IMG/VR virus record: IMGVR_UViG_3300046804_003469
Location: 1-64,000 of that record
Reading direction: 5' to 3' (one strand)
DNA: 64,000 nucleotides
Part shown: positions 19,713 to 31,480 of the stretch, one piece after another
How the letters are laid out: each line of letters begins with the position of its first letter
How positions within the stretch are numbered: the first letter of the stretch is position 1
Notes under the pieces: model-generated
Database searches by the model: none
The model's input: only the letters and a program-made list of their open reading frames with translations
Told to the model about the DNA's origin: nothing
Made by a program: the position numbers and the translations under genes

Positions 19713-19781
19713 TCCTAAATAACGAAGACTTCTTTTTGTAAGAATTCTTTACATTTGTCGTTTAGTACACAAAACAAATTT

Positions 19782-21263
19782 ATGAAACTCAAACAACTGA
19801 TGCTTGCGCCTGTTGCTCTGGGAATGGTTGCTCCTGTTGCTGCGAATGCTGCAGATCTCAATATGGTAGCAGTCAACCAATATTCCTCGGAACAGGTTAC
19901 AAGCGTTTCACAACTGTCTGATGTGCAACCTACCGATTGGGCATATCAAGCACTTAGCAATCTTGTAGAGCGTTATGGTTGCGTCGCTGGTTATCCCAAC
20001 GGCACTTTTGGTGGTGGTCGTGCAATGACTCGTTATGAGGCAGCAGCACTTTTGAATGCTTGTCTGGATCGTGTAACTGAAGTTACCGATGAATTGAAGC
20101 GTCTTACTAATGAATTTGCTTCTGAACTTGCTGTTCTCCGTGGTCGTGTAGATAAACTGGAAGCACAAGTTGGTCAACTTGAAGCAACTCAATTTTCTAC
20201 CACCACAAAACTGCGTGGTGAAGCAACCTTTGTTCTCGGTGGTGTAGATGGTGCTCAACTCTCTAACGGAACTAATGTTGGAAATACTGCTTTCAACTAT
20301 GATCTCCGTCTGAATTTTGACACTTCGTTCACTGGTAAAGACCTGCTCCGTACTCGTCTGCGTTCGGGTAATTTCTCCAGTCAACCCTTTGGTTCTAGTT
20401 CGTCACTCTTCAAACTGGATAAGGCAGAAAGCACTGCTAACAGTGTTATTCTTGATCGTCTGTACTATCAGTTCCCCGCTCTCACTAAAGGTCTGACTCT
20501 GACTGCTGGTGCTCTGGTTCGTAACACCGAAATGGCGTGGGTTCCTACTGCATATAAGTCTGATATTCTGGACTTCTTTGCTGTTGCTGGTGCTCCTGGT
20601 GTTTATAACAAAGCAACTGGTGCTGGTTTTGGTGCCCAATGGGCACAATCTGGTAAGAAAGGTTTCGTTGCTGGTGTGAACTATGTTGCCCAAAATGGCA
20701 ATGATTCCACCAAAGGTGAATTTAACTCTACTGGTGCTCTGAATACTCTGGCACAGATTGGTTATCGTGCTCCTCAGTATGGTATTGCTTTTGGTTACCG
20801 TTATGGTACTGAAGGAACCCGTGTTCGTACTTTTAATGCTATTGATGGTGGTTCTGGTGTTCTTGCTCCTGGACAAACCTCTAACGGTTATGCTATCAAT
20901 GCTTATTGGCAACCAAAGACCTCTGGCATTATTCCTTCCATCAGTGCTGCTTATGGATGGAACAATGTGAGTGGTGCAACAACTCCTAATGGTGCTACTA
21001 ACTCTCAAACCTGGATGGCAGGTGTTCAGTGGAGTGATGTATTTGCTAAGGGTAATGCTGCTGGTTTTGCTATTGGTGCTCCTGGAAATGCTGCTTCTCT
21101 GGATTCTGATCAGAAAGCAATCATGTGGGAAACTTTCTATCGTTATAAAGTCAGTGACAACATCAGTATTACTCCTGCTGTGTTCTATGTTTCTAACAAC
21201 CAATCGTTTAGTGGTGCTTCCTCTAACTATGGTGGTGTGATTCAGACTAAGTTCACTTTCTGA
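19782..21263 (+). CDS. som: Cyanobacterial Som/OprB-type outer-membrane porin with SLH domain
   Basis: Signal peptide, SDVQPTDWAYQAL..LVERYGC SLH domain, coiled coil, FSTTTKL, beta-barrel ending in TKFTF. Confidence 0.9.
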   Translation: MKLKQLMLAPVALGMVAPVAANAADLNMVAVNQYSSEQVTSVSQLSDVQPTDWAYQALSNLVERYGCVAGYPNGTFGGGRAMTRYEAAALLNACLDRVTEVTDELKRLTNEFASELAVLRGRVDKLEAQVGQLEATQFSTTTKLRGEATFVLGGVDGAQLSNGTNVGNTAFNYDLRLNFDTSFTGKDLLRTRLRSGNFSSQPFGSSSSLFKLDKAESTANSVILDRLYYQFPALTKGLTLTAGALVRNTEMAWVPTAYKSDILDFFAVAGAPGVYNKATGAGFGAQWAQSGKKGFVAGVNYVAQNGNDSTKGEFNSTGALNTLAQIGYRAPQYGIAFGYRYGTEGTRVRTFNAIDGGSGVLAPGQTSNGYAINAYWQPKTSGIIPSISAAYGWNNVSGATTPNGATNSQTWMAGVQWSDVFAKGNAAGFAIGAPGNAASLDSDQKAIMWETFYRYKVSDNISITPAVFYVSNNQSFSGASSNYGGVIQTKFTF

Positions 21264-21286
21264 TAAACTACTCACATTTTGAGTTG

Positions 21287-21314
21287 AACCACCCCAGAAA
21301 GGGGTGGTTTTTTT
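21287..21314 (+). terminator. Rho-independent terminator
   Basis: AACCACCCC-agaaa-GGGGTGGTT plus T run. Confidence 0.85.
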
Positions 21315-21352
21315 AATTAAAATCTTAACCAAATCTTAGTTGACCTTAAGAT
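21312..21352 (+). promoter_or_regulatory. Pho-box-like direct repeats upstream of pstS
   Basis: CTTAACCA (21324), CTTAGTTG (21335), CTTAAGAT (21345); resembles the cyanobacterial PyTTAAPyPy(T/A) repeat with about 11-nt period. Confidence 0.65.
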
Positions 21353-21403
21353 TGTCCTCTAGTATTATTACTTATGAAGTCAATTTACTTCTAAAAACTT
21401 TTT

Positions 21404-22369
21404 ATGAAACTTAAAAATTTTATTGCTATTGGTCTGGTTACTGCTCCTGTTGCTGCACTTGCTGGATCTTCTCTGAATGGTGCTGGTGCCACCTTCCCAT
21501 CACCAATTTATCAACGTTGGTTCCAAGATTATGCACGAACTTCTGGGAGTAGGGTTAATTATCAGTCCGTTGGTTCTGGTGCTGGTGTTCGCCAATTCCT
21601 TGCGGGAACAGTTGATTTCGCAGCAAGCGATGAACCAATCAAACCCGCAGAGGCAGCAAAAGTGAAACGTGGTGTCGTTCAAATTCCTATGGTAGGTGGA
21701 ACGATTGCTATTGCCTATAATAAAACTGGATGTACTCTGAAACTCTCTCAGAAACAAACTGTGGATATTTTTGCTGGACGTATTAAGGATTGGAAACAAC
21801 TTCCTAACTGTGGTAATGGTACTATTCGTGTGGTACATCGTGCTGATGCTTCTGGTACTACCTTTGCTTTCACTAACTCTCTTGAATCATTTGGTGGTTG
21901 GACTTATGGTGTTGCTAAATCCGTAAACTGGCCTACTGGTATTGCTTCTAAGGGTAACGAAGGTGTTGCTGGTACGATCAAAAACACTCCTGGTTCTATC
22001 GGTTATGTAAATACTGGATTTGTTCGTGCCAACAAACTCCAAGCAGCAGCAATTCAAAACAAGGCAGGTAAGTTCATTCTTCCTTCTGCTTCCACTGGTT
22101 CTGCTGCTCTGAATAGTATTACTCTAGATACAAACCTTGCAGGTGAAAATCCTAATCCTTCTGGTGTAAATGCATATCCCATTTCTACTCTGACATGGAT
22201 TCTTGCCTATAAGACTGGTAATGGTTCTAAGGCAGGTGATATTCGCTCTGCTCTAAACTATGCTCTAAGTTCTAAGGCACAGATGATTGCTGATGACCTT
22301 GGATATGTTCCTCTTGCTGGAAGTGTTCTAAACAAAGCACGTCTTGCAGTTGGTCGTATCGGTCAGTAA
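21404..22369 (+). CDS. pstS: Phosphate ABC transporter periplasmic binding protein
   Basis: GAGATFP, YQSVGSGAG, DFAASD, RADASGTT, KGNEGV, YPISTLTW. Confidence 0.95.
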   Translation: MKLKNFIAIGLVTAPVAALAGSSLNGAGATFPSPIYQRWFQDYARTSGSRVNYQSVGSGAGVRQFLAGTVDFAASDEPIKPAEAAKVKRGVVQIPMVGGTIAIAYNKTGCTLKLSQKQTVDIFAGRIKDWKQLPNCGNGTIRVVHRADASGTTFAFTNSLESFGGWTYGVAKSVNWPTGIASKGNEGVAGTIKNTPGSIGYVNTGFVRANKLQAAAIQNKAGKFILPSASTGSAALNSITLDTNLAGENPNPSGVNAYPISTLTWILAYKTGNGSKAGDIRSALNYALSSKAQMIADDLGYVPLAGSVLNKARLAVGRIGQ

Positions 22370-23529: not shown

Positions 23530-23536
23530 ATAAATA
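23529..23536 (+). promoter_or_regulatory. T4-type late promoter TATAAATA
   Basis: Exact consensus directly after the terminator and before the hydrolase genes. Confidence 0.8.
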
Positions 23537-23561: not shown

Positions 23562-24233
23562 ATGACATTAGATCTTCATAACTTTTTTAAGTATTATGAT
23601 GATAGTAATTCAAACCATGTAGCAGCAGTTCAATGGTTAGAGGATAATCTTCCTGCTGAATATATGGATGACTCTGAAACTGAATGGGTTAGAATTTTTA
23701 GAACTAAACCTCCAACTCCAGCAGTATTAGATGTTCCCTACTTTAATCAAGTAGATAACTATAGAGATGCACATAGAACTTGTAACTCTTCATCGTGTGC
23801 TATGTGTCTTGCTTTCCTGAAACCAGGAAGCATCAAAGGTGATGATGAATATATTAAAAAAGTGTTCGCAATTGGAGATACTACTGACCATGCTGTACAG
23901 ACAAAAGTTCTGGCAGGTTATGGTGTTAAGTCACACTTTAGTTACAATCTTTCTTTTGCTGATATTGATAAGAGTCTTGATGCTGGGAAACCTGTCGTTA
24001 TTGGCATCTTACACAGGGGTCCTCTTTCTGCTCCTACTGGCGGTCACATGGTTGTAGTGATTGGTAAGACACCAGATGGTAAAGGTTATTACTGTAATGA
24101 TCCATATGGTTCATGTAATGATAATTACACTGGCCCAGTAACAAACGGTAAGAAAACCGTTTATACCAAAGCAATGCTCAAGTATCGTTGGTGCCCAGGT
24201 GGCAATGACGGTTGGGGTAGAATTTTCGACTGA
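23562..24233 (+). CDS. C39-like cysteine peptidase with an N-terminal domain shared with the next gene; probable cell-wall hydrolase
   Basis: VPYFNQ, CNSSSCAM, GHMVVVIG, NDPYG (Cys-His-Asp). Confidence 0.8.
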   Translation: MTLDLHNFFKYYDDSNSNHVAAVQWLEDNLPAEYMDDSETEWVRIFRTKPPTPAVLDVPYFNQVDNYRDAHRTCNSSSCAMCLAFLKPGSIKGDDEYIKKVFAIGDTTDHAVQTKVLAGYGVKSHFSYNLSFADIDKSLDAGKPVVIGILHRGPLSAPTGGHMVVVIGKTPDGKGYYCNDPYGSCNDNYTGPVTNGKKTVYTKAMLKYRWCPGGNDGWGRIFD

Positions 24234-24246
24234 TAGGAGAACAATC

Positions 24247-24915
24247 ATGGCAAAGGTAGATTTACACAACTTTTTTAAATATTATGATGACAAAAATCCT
24301 AATCATGTAAAGGCGGTTCAATGGATGGAAGATCATCTTCCCATCAAATACTTAGAAGATAACTCTGAATGGGCAGAAATTTTTAGAGGAAAAAAGACTA
24401 GTGCTGCACCAGCCCCTGCCGCTGCTGCAGCTCCAGTCGTAGGTGGTGATGATGTACCTATGATGGGCATCAAATTAATCAAAGAGTTTGAAGGATGTAG
24501 ATTAAATGCTTATCCTGATCCTCTTTCTGGTGGACTTCCTATTACAATTGGGTGGGGTTGTACTCGTAAGAAGGATGGATCTCCATTCCATCTTGGAGAT
24601 ACAATCACTCAAGCAGAAGCAGACGAACTTTTAATTGAAGAATGCAAACATAATTTCCTTCCATCACTCCGTAAAATTCCACATTGGAATGAAATGAGTG
24701 ATGGTAAAAGAGGGGCCCTATTATCTTTTGCATATAATTTGGGTGCTGGATTTTACGGTGGTGATAATTTTAATACTATTACTAAACGTTTGAAAAATAA
24801 AGAGTGGGATTTAGTTCCCGATGCATTGTATCTCTACAGAAATCCTGGTTCAAATGTAGAAGCAGGACTTGCACGTAGAAGAAAGGCTGAAGGTGAATCT
24901 TGGAAAAAAGGTTAA
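24247..24915 (+). CDS. GH24 lysozyme/endolysin with shared N-terminal domain and Ala/Pro linker
   Basis: IKEFEG..AYPD..TIGWG, SFAYNLG, GLARRR.AE; AGGAG RBS before ATG 24247. Confidence 0.9.
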   Translation: MAKVDLHNFFKYYDDKNPNHVKAVQWMEDHLPIKYLEDNSEWAEIFRGKKTSAAPAPAAAAAPVVGGDDVPMMGIKLIKEFEGCRLNAYPDPLSGGLPITIGWGCTRKKDGSPFHLGDTITQAEADELLIEECKHNFLPSLRKIPHWNEMSDGKRGALLSFAYNLGAGFYGGDNFNTITKRLKNKEWDLVPDALYLYRNPGSNVEAGLARRRKAEGESWKKG

Positions 24916-24933: not shown

Positions 24934-25272
24934 ATGGAAAACGACAAAAAGGCAAAATGTATGAGTACTGTTATTCGTGTCGCTATTCTTAGTTGGTCTG
25001 CTGCTCTTCTTACAGCATCATATGCGGGTCTTCTTTCAAAGATGGATCCTACCTTTATTGCAACTGTTTTCACTGCTTCCGCTGCTACCTTTGGTATTAA
25101 CACAATGAAAAAAGGTGGAGATGATGATGAGAAAAAAGTAGAACCACGTAGAGAAGAAGTAGTTGTAGAAGCACCTCCAGAACCACCAGCTCCAGAAACT
25201 CTTGAAGCAAGAGTAGAAGCATTGGAGGAAAAGGTTGAAGAGGGTGAAGGATTTGTTCAACCTCGTACATGA
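24934..25272 (+). CDS. Two-TM membrane protein with charged tail; holin candidate
   Basis: Two hydrophobic segments, acidic Pro-rich tail, directly after endolysin. Confidence 0.5.
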   Translation: MENDKKAKCMSTVIRVAILSWSAALLTASYAGLLSKMDPTFIATVFTASAATFGINTMKKGGDDDEKKVEPRREEVVVEAPPEPPAPETLEARVEALEEKVEEGEGFVQPRT

Positions 25273-25276
25273 TAAA

Positions 25277-25489
25277 ATGAAGTATATAACTTTAACATTT
25301 TCTGTGATAAGTTTGGGCATCAGTACCGCTATAGGTATTGGTGCCTATGTAACTTATCAGAAAGCACAAAAGATTCTTGATAATCCAGAAGCATTTGTTG
25401 GTGCCGTTGTAGAAAAGCAAGTTAACAAAGCATTTGAAAAATTACCAGTTCCAAAACTAAATACCAAAGAGTTCAAATTACCTTTCTAA
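25277..25489 (+). CDS. Single-TM small protein
   Basis: MKYITLTFSVISLGISTAIGIGAYV followed by a helical region. Confidence 0.6.
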   Translation: MKYITLTFSVISLGISTAIGIGAYVTYQKAQKILDNPEAFVGAVVEKQVNKAFEKLPVPKLNTKEFKLPF

Positions 25490-25902
25490 TGGCAGATAAA
25501 GATCCTTACATTTACAGAATCCGTGAGATTCATAAAGTAGTTGATGGAGATACTATTGATGCTGACATTGATTTGGGTTTTGATATTTCTCTCACTAAGC
25601 GAATTCGCCTTGCTGGGGTTGATACTCCTGAGTCACGCACTGCAGATGCGAATGAAAAGAAATATGGACTTGAAGCGAAAGAATGGTTGAAGCACCGTTG
25701 TGAAGGTGCTAAGGACATTCTGATCAAGACTGAACTTCCAGACTCCACAGAGAAGTATGGTCGTATTATTGGTCATTTATTCATTAATGGCGAAACAACA
25801 TCCCTCAACAATCAAATGATTACTGAGGGATATGCTTGGAACTATGACGGTGGAACTAAAGTTAAGAATTTTGCCGAATTAGATTCTAAGAGGAAAAAAT
25901 GA
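25489..25902 (+). CDS. Thermonuclease (SNase)-like nuclease
   Basis: VVDGDT, RIRLAGVDTPE, KYGR. Confidence 0.85.
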   Translation: MADKDPYIYRIREIHKVVDGDTIDADIDLGFDISLTKRIRLAGVDTPESRTADANEKKYGLEAKEWLKHRCEGAKDILIKTELPDSTEKYGRIIGHLFINGETTSLNNQMITEGYAWNYDGGTKVKNFAELDSKRKK

Positions 25903-26642
25903 AAAAATTTTTTTCAATTTTATCTGTTGCATTATTATCCTTACCAGTCAGTGCTGAATCATTAACTAAAACACAACCAACTGTAAAACCATATAGTTTA
26001 TCAGCAATGGGTTGTATGATTCTTTTGGAATGTACAGAAGGAGTTGAAAAACTTACATCAGATTCTGAATTTTTGAAAGGATCTGAATTTGATCCTTTTA
26101 GAGAAGAAATTAAAAGTATTCTTACAGGTCTCGATAAACTTAATGTTCCCGTTTATGTTGCCCCAGAAAGATATTTCACACCAAGAACCGTAGGATTATA
26201 TAAACCAGAATATAATCGATTTTTTGTGAATGAAATTCTTCTTAAAGATCCAAGAGAATTCTTGGGAACAATGAGACATGAGGGATGGCATACAGTTCAA
26301 GATTGTATGGGTGGTGGATTGAATACTGCATTTATGGCACAAGTACATCAAGATTCCGAAATACCTTCTTGGGTAATGAAGATGACTAAACTTTCTTATG
26401 AAAGTATGGGCCAAGGTCGTGCTGTGCCTTGGGAAGCAGATGCTAACTGGGCAGAAGAACAATCCAATACAACTGCACAAAAACTTGAAATGTGTGCAAA
26501 AGGTCCATTGTGGGAACAGATTCGTCCAACACCAATGACTATGGAATGGTTAATTGGGTGTGGATGGATGAAACCACAAGAAGGTTTATATCCATATAAT
26601 CCAAATAAAAAATCAGAATATTGTGTAGAGGGAAAATACTAA
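25899..26642 (+). CDS. Exported zincin-like metallopeptidase
   Basis: Signal peptide (VSA/E), HEGWH motif, downstream WEADA glutamate. Confidence 0.7.
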   Translation: MKKFFSILSVALLSLPVSAESLTKTQPTVKPYSLSAMGCMILLECTEGVEKLTSDSEFLKGSEFDPFREEIKSILTGLDKLNVPVYVAPERYFTPRTVGLYKPEYNRFFVNEILLKDPREFLGTMRHEGWHTVQDCMGGGLNTAFMAQVHQDSEIPSWVMKMTKLSYESMGQGRAVPWEADANWAEEQSNTTAQKLEMCAKGPLWEQIRPTPMTMEWLIGCGWMKPQEGLYPYNPNKKSEYCVEGKY

Positions 26643-26643
26643 T

Positions 26644-26859
26644 ATGGTTTATTTTAATATTGTGAGGGTATTCATTATTGTTTGGGCAGCAGTTATGATT
26701 TCTGCTGTGGAATCAGTTGGAATTCGTTCTAATGGTATGGTGGAATTGGAAAATAAAGCAAGACAAGATACCTACGCCAAAGTTCTTATACTTGCTGTAG
26801 GATCTTTTCTTGGTGACGCTGCATTCAATTTAAAAAGAAAAAAAGATAAATCAGAATGA
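26644..26859 (+). CDS. Small two-TM membrane protein
   Basis: Two hydrophobic segments, basic C-terminus. Confidence 0.55.
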   Translation: MVYFNIVRVFIIVWAAVMISAVESVGIRSNGMVELENKARQDTYAKVLILAVGSFLGDAAFNLKRKKDKSE

Positions 26860-27669
26860 CAGTCTAGCAGAAAGTTTTTTTGCAACTTTTTTAGCAGGGG
26901 CAAATAGAGATTTGAATCTCTTTTGTCCCTCTTTTGTAAATTTATCTAATATTACATCATCGATAATAATTTTATTTTCAATTTCATATAAAGAATTACT
27001 ATCTACTTGATCTCTAATATATTGTTCTATATTATCAACTTGATCTACTAAACGAGTTCCTTCAGAAGAGTATTCAAAAATATCAACATGTCCTTCCTCT
27101 GCTAAAACATAATGTAATACAGGTTTAACTTGTTTAATTTTAATTTTAAATTTATTTTTTGCTGCTTGTCTAATCATAGGTTCTGCAGCATTTTTTAATG
27201 TATTGAAAATAGCAGTTGATGCTACAGTTGCAGCAGTAGTTACTACTGCAACTGCCCCTGCTGTAGCGACTATTGATGGATCTGGTAAATCGAGATTTAA
27301 ACCAGCAATTGTGATACTAGGTTTATCTGCTGGTATTTCAGCAACTGGAGTTTGAAGGGGAGGGGTTTGAGCAATTTGAGGCAGATTAGGTGGGGAGGTA
27401 TCTGGTAATCCTCTATTTTTTTCTGGTTGTTCTTCTTGCTTTTTTTGATCTGCTTTTACAGCAGCATCAAATTCTTCTTGTGTCGGTACGTTAATTGTTG
27501 GATAATTTATTTTAGGATCTGGTATATTTACAACAGGAAGTTCCAGACCACGAATGACTGGAACTTCCATTGATTTAACAACAGGTGGATCTATAGTTGG
27601 AATAATACTGGGTCCATTGATTCCAACCTTAGGAACATTATTGTTTCCTATCGTTGGTATCTCGTTCAT
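26851..27669 (-). CDS. Pro-rich membrane-anchored hypothetical protein
   Basis: Pro-rich N-terminal ~130 aa, Ala/Val/Thr TM-like segment, basic stretch, C-terminal globular domain. Confidence 0.7.
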   Translation of the reverse strand: MNEIPTIGNNNVPKVGINGPSIIPTIDPPVVKSMEVPVIRGLELPVVNIPDPKINYPTINVPTQEEFDAAVKADQKKQEEQPEKNRGLPDTSPPNLPQIAQTPPLQTPVAEIPADKPSITIAGLNLDLPDPSIVATAGAVAVVTTAATVASTAIFNTLKNAAEPMIRQAAKNKFKIKIKQVKPVLHYVLAEEGHVDIFEYSSEGTRLVDQVDNIEQYIRDQVDSNSLYEIENKIIIDDVILDKFTKEGQKRFKSLFAPAKKVAKKLSARLSF

Positions 27670-28205
27670 TTTCTTACTACAACATCAGCACAGATTTTTG
27701 AATATGGTGAGTCAGGATGAAACATGACTCCATTTTTATATGCTTCACCACATTTTAATAATCTAACTAATTCAAAATCTAATCTTGCTTTGTCTGCTTC
27801 TGCTTGTTGTCTTGATATTTCTACTCTTACTCTTGATTTGCACAATTCTTGTAAAGAATTATCCAAAGGTAGATTAAATCCAATAGATAATCCAGCATTA
27901 CCAGTATAAGATTGATAAGTTTCTGGATCTCTACTTGCATTAGTATTCCCCACTAAAAATGGTGAAATACTTAGTGTCGGACCCTGACAACTAACCCCTC
28001 CTCCGTAGGTATTAACTGCGAACGGACCTTGTAAGACTTGTACTGCTTGGTTAGTAACATTGCCTGTAGCAGAAGCACTGGGACCAGCAATATTAGTATT
28101 ACTAGGAGCTGTTTGAGCCCACATGGGCGATACATATAAACTTATTGAGTAAAGACAGATACCGAGTTTGTAGTAGATTGTTGTTCTGTGGTGCGATCTA
28201 TCCAT
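27666..28205 (-). CDS. Exported hypothetical protein: beta-hairpin plus coiled coil, Cys-rich
   Basis: Signal-like segment ending MWA/Q; GLSIGFNLPLD then long helix; start uncertain. Confidence 0.7.
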   Translation of the reverse strand: MDRSHHRTTIYYKLGICLYSISLYVSPMWAQTAPSNTNIAGPSASATGNVTNQAVQVLQGPFAVNTYGGGVSCQGPTLSISPFLVGNTNASRDPETYQSYTGNAGLSIGFNLPLDNSLQELCKSRVRVEISRQQAEADKARLDFELVRLLKCGEAYKNGVMFHPDSPYSKICADVVVRK

Positions 28206-28507
28206 GTTTCTTTTGCCACTCCAGGACCTAGATAAGTTTCCGAGAACTGGAACGGAGCACCTTGAGTTTGAATAGTGTAATTTGCTCCCTGTTGAGGAGT
28301 GCCAGGAATGTTTATATTTGTTCCAGTCACTGTGTATGATGTGCCAGTTGTATATTCAACTTGACGAATCGTTTCTACAATTTTTGTAGTGGTTTCTGTT
28401 GTTGCATTTATAGTGCCACGAGTAAAATTGGGCACAACTTGCTCAGCATAAACGGGAGTACAAACGACTCCCGCTGCTAAAAGCAAAGCGGGAGTTATGT
28501 ATCTCAT
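28142..28507 (-). CDS. Exported Thr-rich beta-strand protein
   Basis: Signal peptide (VYA/E); GTNI, FQFSE and C-terminal SVF motifs. Confidence 0.75.
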   Translation of the reverse strand: MRYITPALLLAAGVVCTPVYAEQVVPNFTRGTINATTETTTKIVETIRQVEYTTGTSYTVTGTNINIPGTPQQGANYTIQTQGAPFQFSETYLGPGVAKETWIDRTTEQQSTTNSVSVFTQ

Positions 28508-28965
28508 TTGAATACGCTTAACTCAACACTACGTTGTGCAGTGGCAGTACTTCCAGGACCGCCAGCAGTAACGGTAGGAACACCAGTAGGTGATAATGTA
28601 CCAGCGAGAGAACCCTTGTCCCCTGCTAATTGTGTAACACTATCCCCATAAAGGTTGGGAGAAGCAATAACTCCACCAGAGACCGATTGAACGGTGACTG
28701 GTGTATCAGCAGAAACGAAACTTTCTGAAAAACTAAATGCTTGCCCCGCATTATCAATTGAATAAGTTCCAGCACCACCTACACCACCAAATGAAGTTGC
28801 TTGGATATTTGTACCTGAGGCAGAATATGATGCCCCTATTCTTGTTGATTGAACCGCTGCGCCCTGAACACCAAGTTGAACAGAATCAGTAATCTTTGAT
28901 GTAATTTCAGCAGCACTTACAGGAGTGATTAAGAATAACGAAGAGATTAAAAGTAATCTTTTCAT
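28504..28965 (-). CDS. Exported Gly/Ser-rich beta-strand protein
   Basis: Signal peptide (VSA/A); GTNI, FSFSE and C-terminal SVF motifs. Confidence 0.75.
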   Translation of the reverse strand: MKRLLLISSLFLITPVSAAEITSKITDSVQLGVQGAAVQSTRIGASYSASGTNIQATSFGGVGGAGTYSIDNAGQAFSFSESFVSADTPVTVQSVSGGVIASPNLYGDSVTQLAGDKGSLAGTLSPTGVPTVTAGGPGSTATAQRSVELSVFK

Positions 28966-28996
28966 TTTTCTTATTATTGTGAGTAAACACTAAAAG

Positions 28997-29011
28997 TATT
29001 TATCATAAATA
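28997..29011. promoter_or_regulatory. Back-to-back late promoters TATTTAT-C-ATAAATA
   Basis: Perfect palindrome between divergent ORFs; ATAAATA on both strands. Confidence 0.7.
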
Positions 29012-29034: not shown

Positions 29035-29430
29035 ATGAAACGCCAAAGATCCTCTGAGGATACTTTGACGTTGGGACAGAATATTGCTGATCGGTGTTCA
29101 AGTGCTGTCGGTTCTTGGAAGTTCATAATAATCCAGTCAGTAATTTTAATATTCTGGATTATTCTCAACGTCTCATTACCTAATAGTAAAAAGTGGGATT
29201 CATATCCCTTTATACTTTTAAATTTAATGCTTTCTTTCCAAGCAGCATATACTGGTCCAGTTCTTTTAATGGCAGCAAATCGTCAATCTGAAATTGATAG
29301 AAATAGAGCAATAGAAAATCTTGAACTAGTTCAAAATAATTATAAACAACTTGCAGAATTAATAGAAAATATTAATAAACATTTTCATGAGTTGAATGAA
29401 AAAATCGACAAAAATAATGATAGTAAATGA
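29035..29430 (+). CDS. DUF1003 membrane protein
   Basis: ADR..VGSWKFII, DSYPFILLNLMLSFQAAYTGPVLLMAANRQ. Confidence 0.85.
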   Translation: MKRQRSSEDTLTLGQNIADRCSSAVGSWKFIIIQSVILIFWIILNVSLPNSKKWDSYPFILLNLMLSFQAAYTGPVLLMAANRQSEIDRNRAIENLELVQNNYKQLAELIENINKHFHELNEKIDKNNDSK

Positions 29431-29725: not shown

Positions 29726-30061
29726 ATGGCAGTTTTTGCGGCAAATTTAGTAATACCACAAGGAACTGATTTCGAACAATCATTTAATCTTTTTAATGAA
29801 GATGGTAGTCATTTAGTACTTACTGGATGCGCTGTTACAGCAAAACTCCGTAAGTATTATGGATCTGTAGGAGTAACTACCTTTACTTCATCTATTGTAA
29901 ATCCAACTCAAGGTGGAATTAAAATATCATTAAATGAAACACAAACTGCAAATTTGACAGTGGGTAGACATTACTATGATGTTCTGGTAACGTCTGGATC
30001 AAGCATTACTTCAAAGGTTATTGAAGGAATGATTCTAGTAGAAGGAACTGCATCTTTATAA
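29726..30061 (+). CDS. Small Ig-like/BppU-like virion-associated protein
   Basis: NLVIPQGTDF, GRHYYDVLV, KVIEG pattern common in cyanomyoviruses. Confidence 0.6.
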   Translation: MAVFAANLVIPQGTDFEQSFNLFNEDGSHLVLTGCAVTAKLRKYYGSVGVTTFTSSIVNPTQGGIKISLNETQTANLTVGRHYYDVLVTSGSSITSKVIEGMILVEGTASL

Positions 30062-30400: not shown

Positions 30401-31480
30401 ATGACTGCTTCAATTGCTCAACAACGTTCTAATTCCACCTGGGAGTCTTTCTGCCAGTGGGTTACTTCAACCGATAATCGTCTTTATGTAGGTTGGTTTG
30501 GAACTCTTATGATTCCTTGCCTGCTTGCTGCTACTATTTGTTTCATCATTGCATTCATCGGTGCTCCTCCTGTAGACATTGATGGTATCCGTGAACCCGT
30601 TGCTGGTTCACTCATGTACGGAAACAACATCATCTCTGGTGCTGTAATTCCTTCGTCAAATGCTATTGGACTGCACTTTTACCCCATCTGGGAAGCTGCT
30701 TCCCTAGATGAGTGGCTCTACAACGGTGGTCCTTTCCAACTGGTTGTGTTCCACTTCCTCATCGGCATCTATGCTTATATGGGTCGTGAATGGGAACTCT
30801 CTTATCGTCTGGGTATGCGCCCTTGGATCTGTGTCGCTTATTCGGCACCTGTTGCTGCTGCATCTGCAGTGTTCCTGGTCTATCCTTTCGGTCAAGGTTC
30901 TTTCTCTGATGCGATGCCTCTGGGTATCTCTGGTACGTTTAACTACATGCTTGTGTTCCAGGCAGAACACAACATTCTGATGCACCCCTTCCATATGCTT
31001 GGAGTTGCTGGTGTCTTCGGTGGTTCTCTGTTCAGTGCGATGCACGGTTCTCTGGTTACTTCCTCGCTGGTTCGTGAAACCACCGAGAATGAGTCGCAGA
31101 ACTATGGTTACAAGTTCGGTCAAGAAGAAGAGACCTACAACATTGTTGCTGCTCACGGTTACTTTGGTCGTCTGATCTTCCAATACGCTTCGTTCAACAA
31201 CTCTCGGTCACTTCACTTCTTCCTTGCTGCATGGCCTGTTGTTGGTATCTGGTTCACCGCTCTTGGTGTTTCCACGATGGCGTTCAACCTGAACGGATTC
31301 AACTTCAACCAGTCTATCGTTGATAGTCAGGGTAAAGTGATCAACACTTGGGCAGATGTCCTCAACCGTGCTGGACTCGGGATGGAGGTAATGCACGAGC
31401 GCAACGCCCACAACTTCCCTCTTGATCTTGCTGCTGTTGAGAACACTCCTGTTGCTCTCACTGCACCTGCAATTGGTTGA
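30401..31480 (+). CDS. psbA: Photosystem II D1 protein, no intron
   Basis: Full-length D1: [44 protein letters not shown]. Confidence 0.99.

Follow-up and report, generated by a model that had tools for sequence, protein, structure and literature searches.

The Four-Gene Cluster and Its Promoter

The window analysed here is a stretch of 64,000 nucleotides (positions 1 to 64,000 of the IMG/VR virus record IMGVR_UViG_3300046804_003469), and the subject of this work is a cluster of four minus-strand open reading frames (ORFs), g1 to g4, that spans 26851-28965. Together with a nearby gene encoding a DUF6450 protein with two predicted transmembrane (TM) segments, these genes form a real, strongly conserved and phage-specific envelope module, and the cluster is kept together in almost every myo- or podovirus that infects Synechococcus or Prochlorococcus. 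The window itself is from a T4-like freshwater cyanophage. This is concluded from its gene content, which includes psbA (30401-31480) as well as hli-like, PstS-like, and porin-like genes, from the closest isolates, which are the freshwater Synechococcus myoviruses DSL-LC03 and DSL-LC02 (Kyanoviridae) with approximately 82% nucleotide identity across the four-gene region, and from the public runs containing the window sequence, all of which are freshwater DNA metagenomes.

The first gene, g1 (D1; 28504-28965), encodes a Ser/Thr/Gly-rich beta protein of 153 amino acids that is predicted to be exported, and its orthologs are Syn9 gp167, T4-GC 237, and phrog_564. It is followed by g2 (D2; 28142-28507), the 121-residue product of which is a predicted exported DUF6322 protein (Syn9 gp166, T4-GC 236, phrog_650). 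The g3 gene (27666-28205; Syn9 gp165, T4-GC 235, phrog_848 and phrog_1755) encodes 179 amino acids with the features of an exported protein, an invariant GNVTNQAVQVLQGP motif, four cysteines, and a predicted amphipathic beta-hairpin and long helix. The last gene, g4 (26851-27669), encodes 272 amino acids comprising a Pro-rich N-terminal half, one predicted membrane segment, a basic flank on its C-terminal side, and a clade-specific C-terminal domain; its family includes Syn9 gp164 (T4-GC 234, phrog_570) and P-SSP7 gp42 (phrog_9426). The genes overlap by 4 nucleotides (ATGA) at both g1/g2 and g3/g4, and the start codon of g3 lies 64 nucleotides within g2, in a different frame. The 3' end of g4 overlaps by 9 nucleotides (26851-26859) with that of a convergent gene encoding a 71-residue protein with two TM segments, and no terminator-like hairpin was found at this junction between the two convergent late operons.

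An ATAAATA motif resembling a late promoter is found on the minus strand at 28997-29003, 32 nucleotides upstream of the g1 ATG. The sequence-only reading that preceded this analysis had described four overlapping minus-strand genes expressed late under one such motif, and the ORFs, the overlaps, and the motif are all present. ATAAATA is rarer than expected in the window (18 copies observed, 36 expected), consistent with a functional signal. Among 63 related loci, 54 have [AC]TAAATA no more than 60 nucleotides upstream of the g1 ortholog, at a distance of approximately 24 nucleotides, while the chance expectation is 0.016. It was found upstream of the g2 ortholog in 0 of 76 loci and of the g3 ortholog in 0 of 83. 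The DUF6450 gene is preceded by the late-type motif in 35/70 loci, again against a chance expectation of 0.016. As in T4-type late units, a TATAAATA-like late promoter precedes the first gene and none is found within the unit. Since the motif is conserved upstream of D1 and was never found upstream of D2 or g3, a single late-type transcription unit beginning at g1 is predicted, and this is well supported by conservation; late expression, as proposed earlier, is what such a motif would indicate.

Two ATAAATA motifs stand back to back at 28997-29011, one on each strand (TATTTATGATAAATA), the one directed at g1 and the other at a DUF1003 gene (29035-29430), 24 nucleotides from its ATG. The arrangement looks like a compact bidirectional late-promoter pair.

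Two Paralogous Beta Proteins with Predicted Export Signals

Both g1 and g2 start with leaders of the textbook Sec type (MKRLLLISSLFLITPVSA followed by AE in g1, and MRYITPALLLAAGVVCTPVYA followed by EQ in g2), and these are conserved in all orthologs. The mature N-termini are also conserved, beginning with EITSKITDSVQL in g1 and VVPNFTxG in g2, as are the C-termini (ELSVFK and S(V/I)F(T/S)Q, respectively). The shared motifs SY.(A/V)(S/T)GTNI, F.FSE, and SVF near the C-terminus had made the two proteins look paralogous. The motifs are there, and the comparisons agree: BLASTP aligns g1 and g2 with E = 3e-6, iterated hidden Markov models (HMMs) merge the D1 and D2 families, and an hhalign comparison of the D1 and D2 profiles gives a probability of 96.4% and E = 1e-9. 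g2 is a member of DUF6322 (PF19847) with a score of 52.0 bits (E = 1.1e-13), the gathering cut-off being 30.6 bits; g1 scores 14.7 bits, which is under this cut-off. Because of the profile alignment and the HMM merging, g1 is regarded as a distant DUF6322 paralog beneath the Pfam threshold. In some GenBank records the D1 orthologs carry the label "OMP1 protein."

The AlphaFold2 monomer model of g2 (predicted local distance difference test score, pLDDT, of 76; predicted template modelling score, pTM, of 0.32) displays two strands of approximately 24 residues and two short strands. The strands are rich in Thr and polar on both faces. When the model was compared to the PDB using Foldseek, the list was headed by long hairpins of oligomeric tubes, namely phi29-like tail knobs and the pores of anthrax PA, CDTb, iota, lysenin, and aerolysin, none of which are significant (best E = 5e-3, template modelling score (TM-score) at most 0.3). 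In solved structures, the shape that the model predicts for these ~24-residue strands is found only in oligomeric tubes or pore stems.

The stems of pore-formers (anthrax PA, CDTb, iota Ib, lysenin, aerolysin) and the tail tubes of phages (the phi29, Andhra, and P68 knobs) thus share a long two-strand hairpin with the g2 model, and g2 is Ser/Thr-rich like the stems of pore toxins. However, mature g2 has only about 100 residues, no head or receptor domains, and strands that are not membrane-amphipathic. Membership in the beta-barrel pore-forming toxins was rejected, as there is no Pfam or PDB sequence match and the toxin stems give Foldseek E-values of at least 0.02 with TM-scores of at most 0.24.

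A Putative Exported Hairpin-Helix Protein

The leader of g3 is only moderately hydrophobic in the window. All of the 83 homologs tested nevertheless combine a basic n-region with a hydrophobic stretch (median 11-residue hydropathy 2.14, versus 0.86 in cytoplasmic controls) and, roughly 20 residues ahead of an invariant GNVTNQA, an AxA-like site. The public gene call for g3 of the window starts at Met28 and gives a protein of 152 amino acids, which is then without a signal peptide. The call of P-SSP7 gene 045 likewise starts at an internal Met (noted with locus L112, 2784-3239). The true start of g3 is inside the preceding gene, and annotation errors of this type have also been reported for spanin genes.

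Mature g3 opens with an invariant ATGNVTNQAVQVLQGP segment. It has four invariant cysteines and no CxxC pattern, which fits disulfide bonds formed outside the cytoplasm. The monomer model is poor (pLDDT 60, pTM approximately 0.3) and places a hairpin at 77-89 and 99-111, after which follows a confidently predicted helix at 116-157. The alternating hydrophobic pattern of the strand GLSIGFNLPL is kept among the homologs, and the marine homologs have a 34-residue insertion at the tip of the hairpin. The description of g3 as an exported protein with an amphipathic strand and a long helix was consequently borne out by the leaders, the conserved alternation, and the predicted helix.

In the podovirus S-TIP37 an ORF encoding 84 amino acids shares 86 nucleotides with the 3' end of g3 (locus L003, 4494-4748). 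The encoded protein, a member of phrog_12220 with a weak match to phrog_462 ("lipoprotein"), combines a TM segment at its N-terminus with a coiled-coil-like tail. Its predicted topology is i-spanin-like.

The succession of strand and helix had been compared to one repeat of the TolC family. In these proteins an amphipathic beta-hairpin is, as in the g3 model, directly followed by a long helix, and TolC, OprM, MtrE, SilC, and CmeC dominate the Foldseek list for g3, which is insignificant (best TolC match E = 0.29, TM-score 0.24). While TolC-family proteins have approximately 430-500 amino acids and two repeats, g3 has 179 (about 150 when mature), one hairpin, and one helix. Membership of g3 in the TolC/OEP family was rejected: there is no Pfam OEP match, the PDB profile search was empty, and the TolC family gives Foldseek E-values of at least 0.17 with TM-scores of at most 0.29. 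What remains of the likeness is the hairpin-plus-helix shape. The Foldseek comparison to TolC and beta-pore-forming toxins that had been suggested as a check hence gave no significant match for either the g2 or the g3 model.

If g3 were an outer-membrane channel exporting g1 and g2, the module could build a surface fibre or an amyloid-like coat as in the curli and Fap systems, serving in aggregation, adhesion, or protection of infected cells. Curli (CsgA/B/G) and Fap resemble the module in having two paralogous secreted beta subunits beside an exported putative outer-membrane partner. The Thr/Ser/Gly-rich g1 and g2 with their conserved N- and C-terminal strands could be such subunits, g3 with its hairpin and helix would be the third exported protein, and the isolated long hairpin modelled for g2 would have to oligomerise for stability. 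However, the module proteins are without the imperfect-repeat amyloid units, and they are encoded in a phage lysis-gene setting rather than in a bacterial biofilm operon. Membership of g1-g4 in these systems was rejected as no match to CsgA/B/G or FapB/C/F was found in Pfam, NCBIfam, or the PDB, by sequence or profile. A surface fibre built late would further be of no obvious benefit to a lytic phage, and it would leave the lysis-gene context unexplained. We consider such a system improbable.

The Proline-Rich Predicted Membrane Protein

Among the first 135 residues of g4, 24 are prolines. An Ala/Thr/Gly-rich hydrophobic segment at approximately 133-155 is followed by a stretch rich in Lys and Arg, so the Pro-rich region, the TM-like segment, and the basic stretch reported earlier are all found. 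In 81/81 homologs Lys and Arg are in excess on the C-terminal side of the membrane segment (median 3 versus 0), which leads to a predicted topology with the N-terminus outside and the C-terminus inside (N-out/C-in). The membrane segment of the homologs begins at a median position of 153. Twenty marine homologs have four cysteines in the N-terminal part, while the g4 proteins of the clade to which the window belongs have an additional C-terminal domain of about 100 residues. Taken with the conserved leaders of g1-g3, the membrane segment of g4 is in line with the earlier proposal that the proteins are exported or membrane-anchored, as far as sequence signals can tell.

Conservation, Gene Order, and Distribution

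Synteny was analysed in 85 loci, 80 of which are from IMG/VR. The order D-D-g3 is invariant, with a single D gene in the podoviruses, and so are the long overlaps between these genes. g4 adjoins g3 in 82/85 loci, on the same strand in the clade of the window and convergent elsewhere. The gene encoding the two-TM DUF6450 protein is found in 73/85 loci, always less than 5 kb from g3, and in 20 loci it adjoins g4, often overlapping it. In most relatives g4 and the two-TM gene form a separate operon that is convergent to D-D-g3. The conserved module is five genes in two units, D1-D2-g3 and the two-TM gene plus g4. Because the relatives keep this layout, the four-gene operon of the window is taken to be a local rearrangement. 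The operon proposed from the sequence thus stands in so far as its genes co-occur tightly in the 85 loci, while the conserved unit has one gene more and is divided in two. The five Syn9 proteins gp167/166/165/164/163 correspond to T4-GC 237/236/235/234/218, which are found in nearly all of the 16 cyanomyoviruses studied by Sullivan et al. (2010; PMC3037559). Conservation within the module is strongest in parts of g3 and the D proteins and weaker in the membrane proteins.

These data also bear on the idea that the genes are real but unrelated neighbours, brought together by an accident of gene order and without a common role. The strand and position of g4 differ between clades and the neighbours of the module vary, as such an accident would allow. 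The D-D-g3 order and its long overlaps are, however, invariant, and g4 and the two-TM gene remain within a few kb of g3 across myo- and podoviruses despite the rearrangements, making this explanation very improbable.

A total of 460 phage records contain g3, each of a Synechococcus or Prochlorococcus phage or a marine uncultured virus. Both T4-like and T7-like phages are represented, the latter including P-SSP7, S-TIP37, S-RIP2, NATL1A-7, and P-SSP10. g2 is found in 371 records and the two-TM gene in 430. A supplement to PMC7238727 places S-TIM5, a myovirus that is neither T4- nor T7-like, in the ortholog group of Syn9 gp166 (D2), and a third cyanophage lineage may thus possess the module. Among the core genes of cyanopodoviruses, "gp47" (PMC4646655) was considered as a g3 homolog and dropped, since RefSeq gene 047 is the small terminase.

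When one genome per species from 185,579 bacterial and archaeal species was scanned, only 26 loci matched. These are mostly metagenome-assembled genomes (MAGs) or single-cell assemblies, several of them labelled as non-cyanobacterial taxa. Two are labelled as isolates, one being a phage-sized contig (188 kb) and the other a fragment of 423 bp. A host-derived auxiliary gene was rejected as an explanation, the 26 loci being read as cyanophage DNA and not as host genes, and the g3 family looks phage-specific. Cyanophage contigs with the module have been binned in MAGs labelled Formosa, Lewinella, Euryarchaeota, Neomarinimicrobiota, and others (loci L088-L091, L097, and more), while the 188-kb contig belongs to a Nonlabens isolate assembly. 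The module contigs in non-cyanobacterial assemblies are probably due to contamination or mis-binning.

The signal peptides had been seen as an argument against ordinary virion proteins. In agreement with this, T4-GC 218 and 234-237 are absent from the published virion proteomes of S-SM1, S-PM2, and Syn9 (Sullivan et al., 2010; PMC3037559, Table S8), and a structural role in the virion was rejected. Exported or membrane-bound proteins that are not found in virions might instead remodel the envelope of the infected cell by coating or plugging its outer-membrane structures. Through superinfection exclusion or receptor masking they would then block injection by other phages or adsorption of the progeny to debris, in analogy to lambda Lom, T5 Llp, and T4 Imm/Sp. 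Phage outer-membrane proteins in such roles have been discussed for large phages (bioRxiv 10.64898/2026.10.24.761521), and the "OMP1" label of some D1 orthologs points in the same direction. Exclusion genes are, however, usually early, variable, and receptor-specific, while the module has late-type promoters, is near-universal, and is common to T4-like and T7-like phages with different adsorption machinery. PADLOC gave no match, and the linkage to endolysin and holin-like genes described below would not be expected. Such a role therefore appears unlikely, though less so than the other alternatives considered here.

Searches of Pfam, NCBIfam, and PADLOC with the module proteins gave nothing beyond DUF6322 and DUF6450, and the matches in PHROGs were only to families of unknown function (564, 650, 848, 1755, 570, 9426, 721). 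Sequence-profile searches against the PDB with g3, D2, and g4 yielded nothing or only noise, Foldseek found no significant PDB match for the g2 or g3 model, and in the ESM Atlas the matches were limited to viral clusters without a name or to DUF6322. In the literature on DUF6322, DUF6450, cyanophage spanins and holins, and OMP1 no functional study was found. The families of the module are already catalogued as DUF6322, DUF6450, and PHROGs.

Linked Genes and the Lysis Context

On the plus strand of the window an ATAAATA motif (23530-23536) lies ahead of a run of genes starting with an endolysin-type gene of the Peptidase_C39_2 family (23562-24233) and a Phage_lysozyme (GH24) endolysin gene (24199-24915). 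These two are part of the context and outside the conserved core. Their products share an N-terminal domain of about 50 residues (DLHNFFKYYDD..NHV.AVQW.ED.LP) that matches no family and may be a cell-wall-binding or targeting module. Only 19 nucleotides after the lysozyme gene follows the fifth conserved member of the module (24934-25272; T4-GC 218, phrog_721), encoding the 112-residue DUF6450 protein with two hydrophobic segments and an acidic/basic tail. The run then continues with four recurrent neighbours, all on the plus strand, for which membership in the module is uncertain. They encode an 84-residue single-TM protein (25235-25489), an SNase nuclease (25489-25902), a predicted exported HExxH protein of phrog_591 (25899-26642), and the above-mentioned 71-residue two-TM protein (26644-26859). 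The HExxH protein has 247 amino acids and a HEGWH motif, is named "Gp219 family" in the ESM Atlas, is found beside the module in 35 loci, and displays a weak fold-level resemblance to zincin-like metallopeptidases. The whole run, from the C39-like peptidase through the GH24 lysozyme, the two-TM DUF6450 gene, and the neighbours, converges on g4-g3-g2-g1.

The DUF6450 protein has the properties by which holins are recognised, being small, with at least one TM segment and a charged C-terminus, and encoded next to an endolysin. It resembles the class II holins in its size, its two hydrophobic segments, its highly charged C-terminus, and the position of its gene directly after the endolysins. It differs from them in that DUF6450 belongs to no named holin family and that its gene is often apart from the endolysin gene in marine phages. 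The endolysin and holin-like genes lie 1.6-3.3 kb from the overlapping g2/g3 pair in the window. This linkage is not universal across the loci; an endolysin gene is found directly upstream of the two-TM gene in 17 of the 31 loci having both.

In P-SSP7 the module consists of genes 042 (one TM segment), 043 (two TM segments), 044 (with a signal predicted by SignalP), and 045, and it is located between the tail-fibre genes and the small terminase gene (TerS). In T7 the holin gene 17.5 is found at the position between tail fibre and small terminase, close to the spanin genes 18.5 and 18.7. The podovirus module thus occupies the position of the T7 lysis cassette, and this was counted as evidence for a role in lysis.

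A link to lysis could also mean control of its timing, the periplasmic proteins and g4 being antiholin-like or sensor partners of the two-TM protein in the manner of T4 RI/RIII and the holin. T4 RI is a periplasmic antiholin. g4 adjoins the two-TM gene in the 20 loci mentioned above, and the T4 r genes are absent from the cyanomyoviruses (Clokie et al., 2010; PMC2984593). However, a regulator should hardly require three abundant exported proteins that are rich in beta structure, with very long strands and an amphipathic hairpin, and the strongest conservation is in g3 and the D proteins rather than in the membrane proteins. Control of timing is judged unlikely, slightly more so than envelope remodelling.

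Some features outside the module may be mentioned. At 19755-22369 the window encodes an SLH + OprB porin homolog (502 amino acids, with a signal peptide and a late motif upstream) followed by a PstS-like phosphate-binding protein; DSL-LC03 has an "autotransporter beta-barrel" protein at this place. Just upstream of psbA is a gene (29726-30061) with its own ATAAATA-type motif that encodes a 111-residue protein with a weak match to an LtfC-like beta-sandwich (phrog_3304, L-shaped tail fibre assembly).

Comparison with Spanins

In the way the module may work, the spanins are the closest known system. The two-component spanins (lambda Rz/Rz1, T7 gp18.5/18.7, and T4 PseT.3/PseT.2) are late proteins that between them reach both membranes and the periplasm, as is predicted for the module. 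They also share with it Pro-rich and coiled-coil or helical periplasmic parts and conserved periplasmic cysteines. Spanin gene pairs display unusually long out-of-frame overlaps, to which the start of g3 64 nucleotides within g2 may be compared, and they are linked to holin and endolysin genes as the module is in the window. In contrast to the spanins, to which it has no sequence similarity, the module has four or five components instead of two and includes beta-rich periplasmic subunits.

None of the module proteins could be assigned to a known spanin class. An o-spanin of the Rz1 type was rejected because the lipobox [LVI][ASTVI][GAS]C is found in the leaders of 0/66 D1, 0/79 D2, and 2/85 g3 homologs, the sites being of the AxA type. 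g4 was rejected as an Rz-like i-spanin, since its anchor is on the C-terminal side with a predicted N-out/C-in topology and is not an N-terminal type II anchor. A unimolecular spanin like T1 gp11 was rejected as well, as both g4 and its P-SSP7 homolog have a membrane segment on the C-terminal side and neither an N-terminal signal nor a lipobox. Kongari et al. (2018; PMC6139136) list P-SSP7, Syn9, S-ShM2, P-SSM2, and other cyanophages as spanin-less, and they propose that the spanins could be replaced by an outer-membrane protein acting with an inner-membrane protein that is anchored at its C-terminus in the N-out/C-in orientation. A recognisable gene for the spanin step is missing from these cyanophages.

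A Candidate Trans-Envelope Complex

The reading we favour, while giving it somewhat less than even chances, is that g1-g4 and the two-TM DUF6450 protein form a lysis-linked complex that spans the envelope and performs the task of the spanins. It builds on the genomic context, the predicted topologies, and low-confidence monomer models. In such a complex g4 would be anchored in the cytoplasmic membrane with its basic C-terminal side inside and its Pro-rich N-terminal half extended as an arm in the periplasm. g1 and g2 would be exported by the Sec system, and through their long polar beta-hairpins they would assemble in the periplasm to form an elongated tube or fibre. g3 would be exported and disulfide-bonded, its amphipathic hairpin associating with or inserting into the outer membrane and its helix facing the periplasm. 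The holin-like protein and the endolysins would first breach the inner membrane and the peptidoglycan, after which the trans-envelope assembly would disrupt or perforate the outer membrane, as the spanins do in other Gram-negative phages.

Several observations weigh against a complex of this kind. The late motif also precedes genes that are not involved in lysis, such as the porin-like and SNase genes. The AlphaFold models of g2 and g3 are low-confidence monomers with insignificant Foldseek matches, and there is neither a lipobox nor any other canonical spanin feature. The holin role of the DUF6450 protein is itself an analogy. Marine T4-like cyanophages carry the module among replication genes (regA, gp44/62, hsp20, gp43), usually with no endolysin gene adjacent to it. 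For g4 to be N-out, 130-190 residues would have to be exported with no signal peptide, and this is unusual. RNA runs were sought among the public runs containing the sequence and none were listed, all being freshwater DNA metagenomes. Kongari et al. (PMC6139136) also consider that the hosts may need no disruption of the outer membrane.

Three roles had been proposed from the sequence: surface fibres, superinfection exclusion, and disruption of the outer membrane. The last of these fits the genomic context best, while nothing specific was found for the other two, and the earlier interpretation as a whole is partly supported.

A wider form of the favoured reading, in which all T4-like and T7-like phages of picocyanobacteria, marine and freshwater, would share a five-protein machine that perforates or fuses the outer membrane and is unrelated to spanins and disruptins, is more doubtful. 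Its parts would be a two-TM holin-like protein, a Pro-rich arm anchored on its C-terminal side, two paralogous long-hairpin subunits of a periplasmic beta-tube, and a disulfide-bonded hairpin-helix subunit in the outer membrane.

Significance

Much of the carbon fixed in the ocean is set free when these phages lyse Prochlorococcus and Synechococcus. A published survey lists the phages as spanin-less (PMC6139136). With a near-universal five-gene candidate and predicted locations for its proteins, the passage of cyanophages through the outer membrane becomes a testable question. If the module has another role, it would still be among the most conserved cyanophage-specific gene sets without an assigned function. 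If the wider reading is true, the module would represent a third, structurally new class of outer-membrane disruption by phages, and a step so far missing from the lysis of viruses that are among the most abundant in the ocean would be supplied by it.

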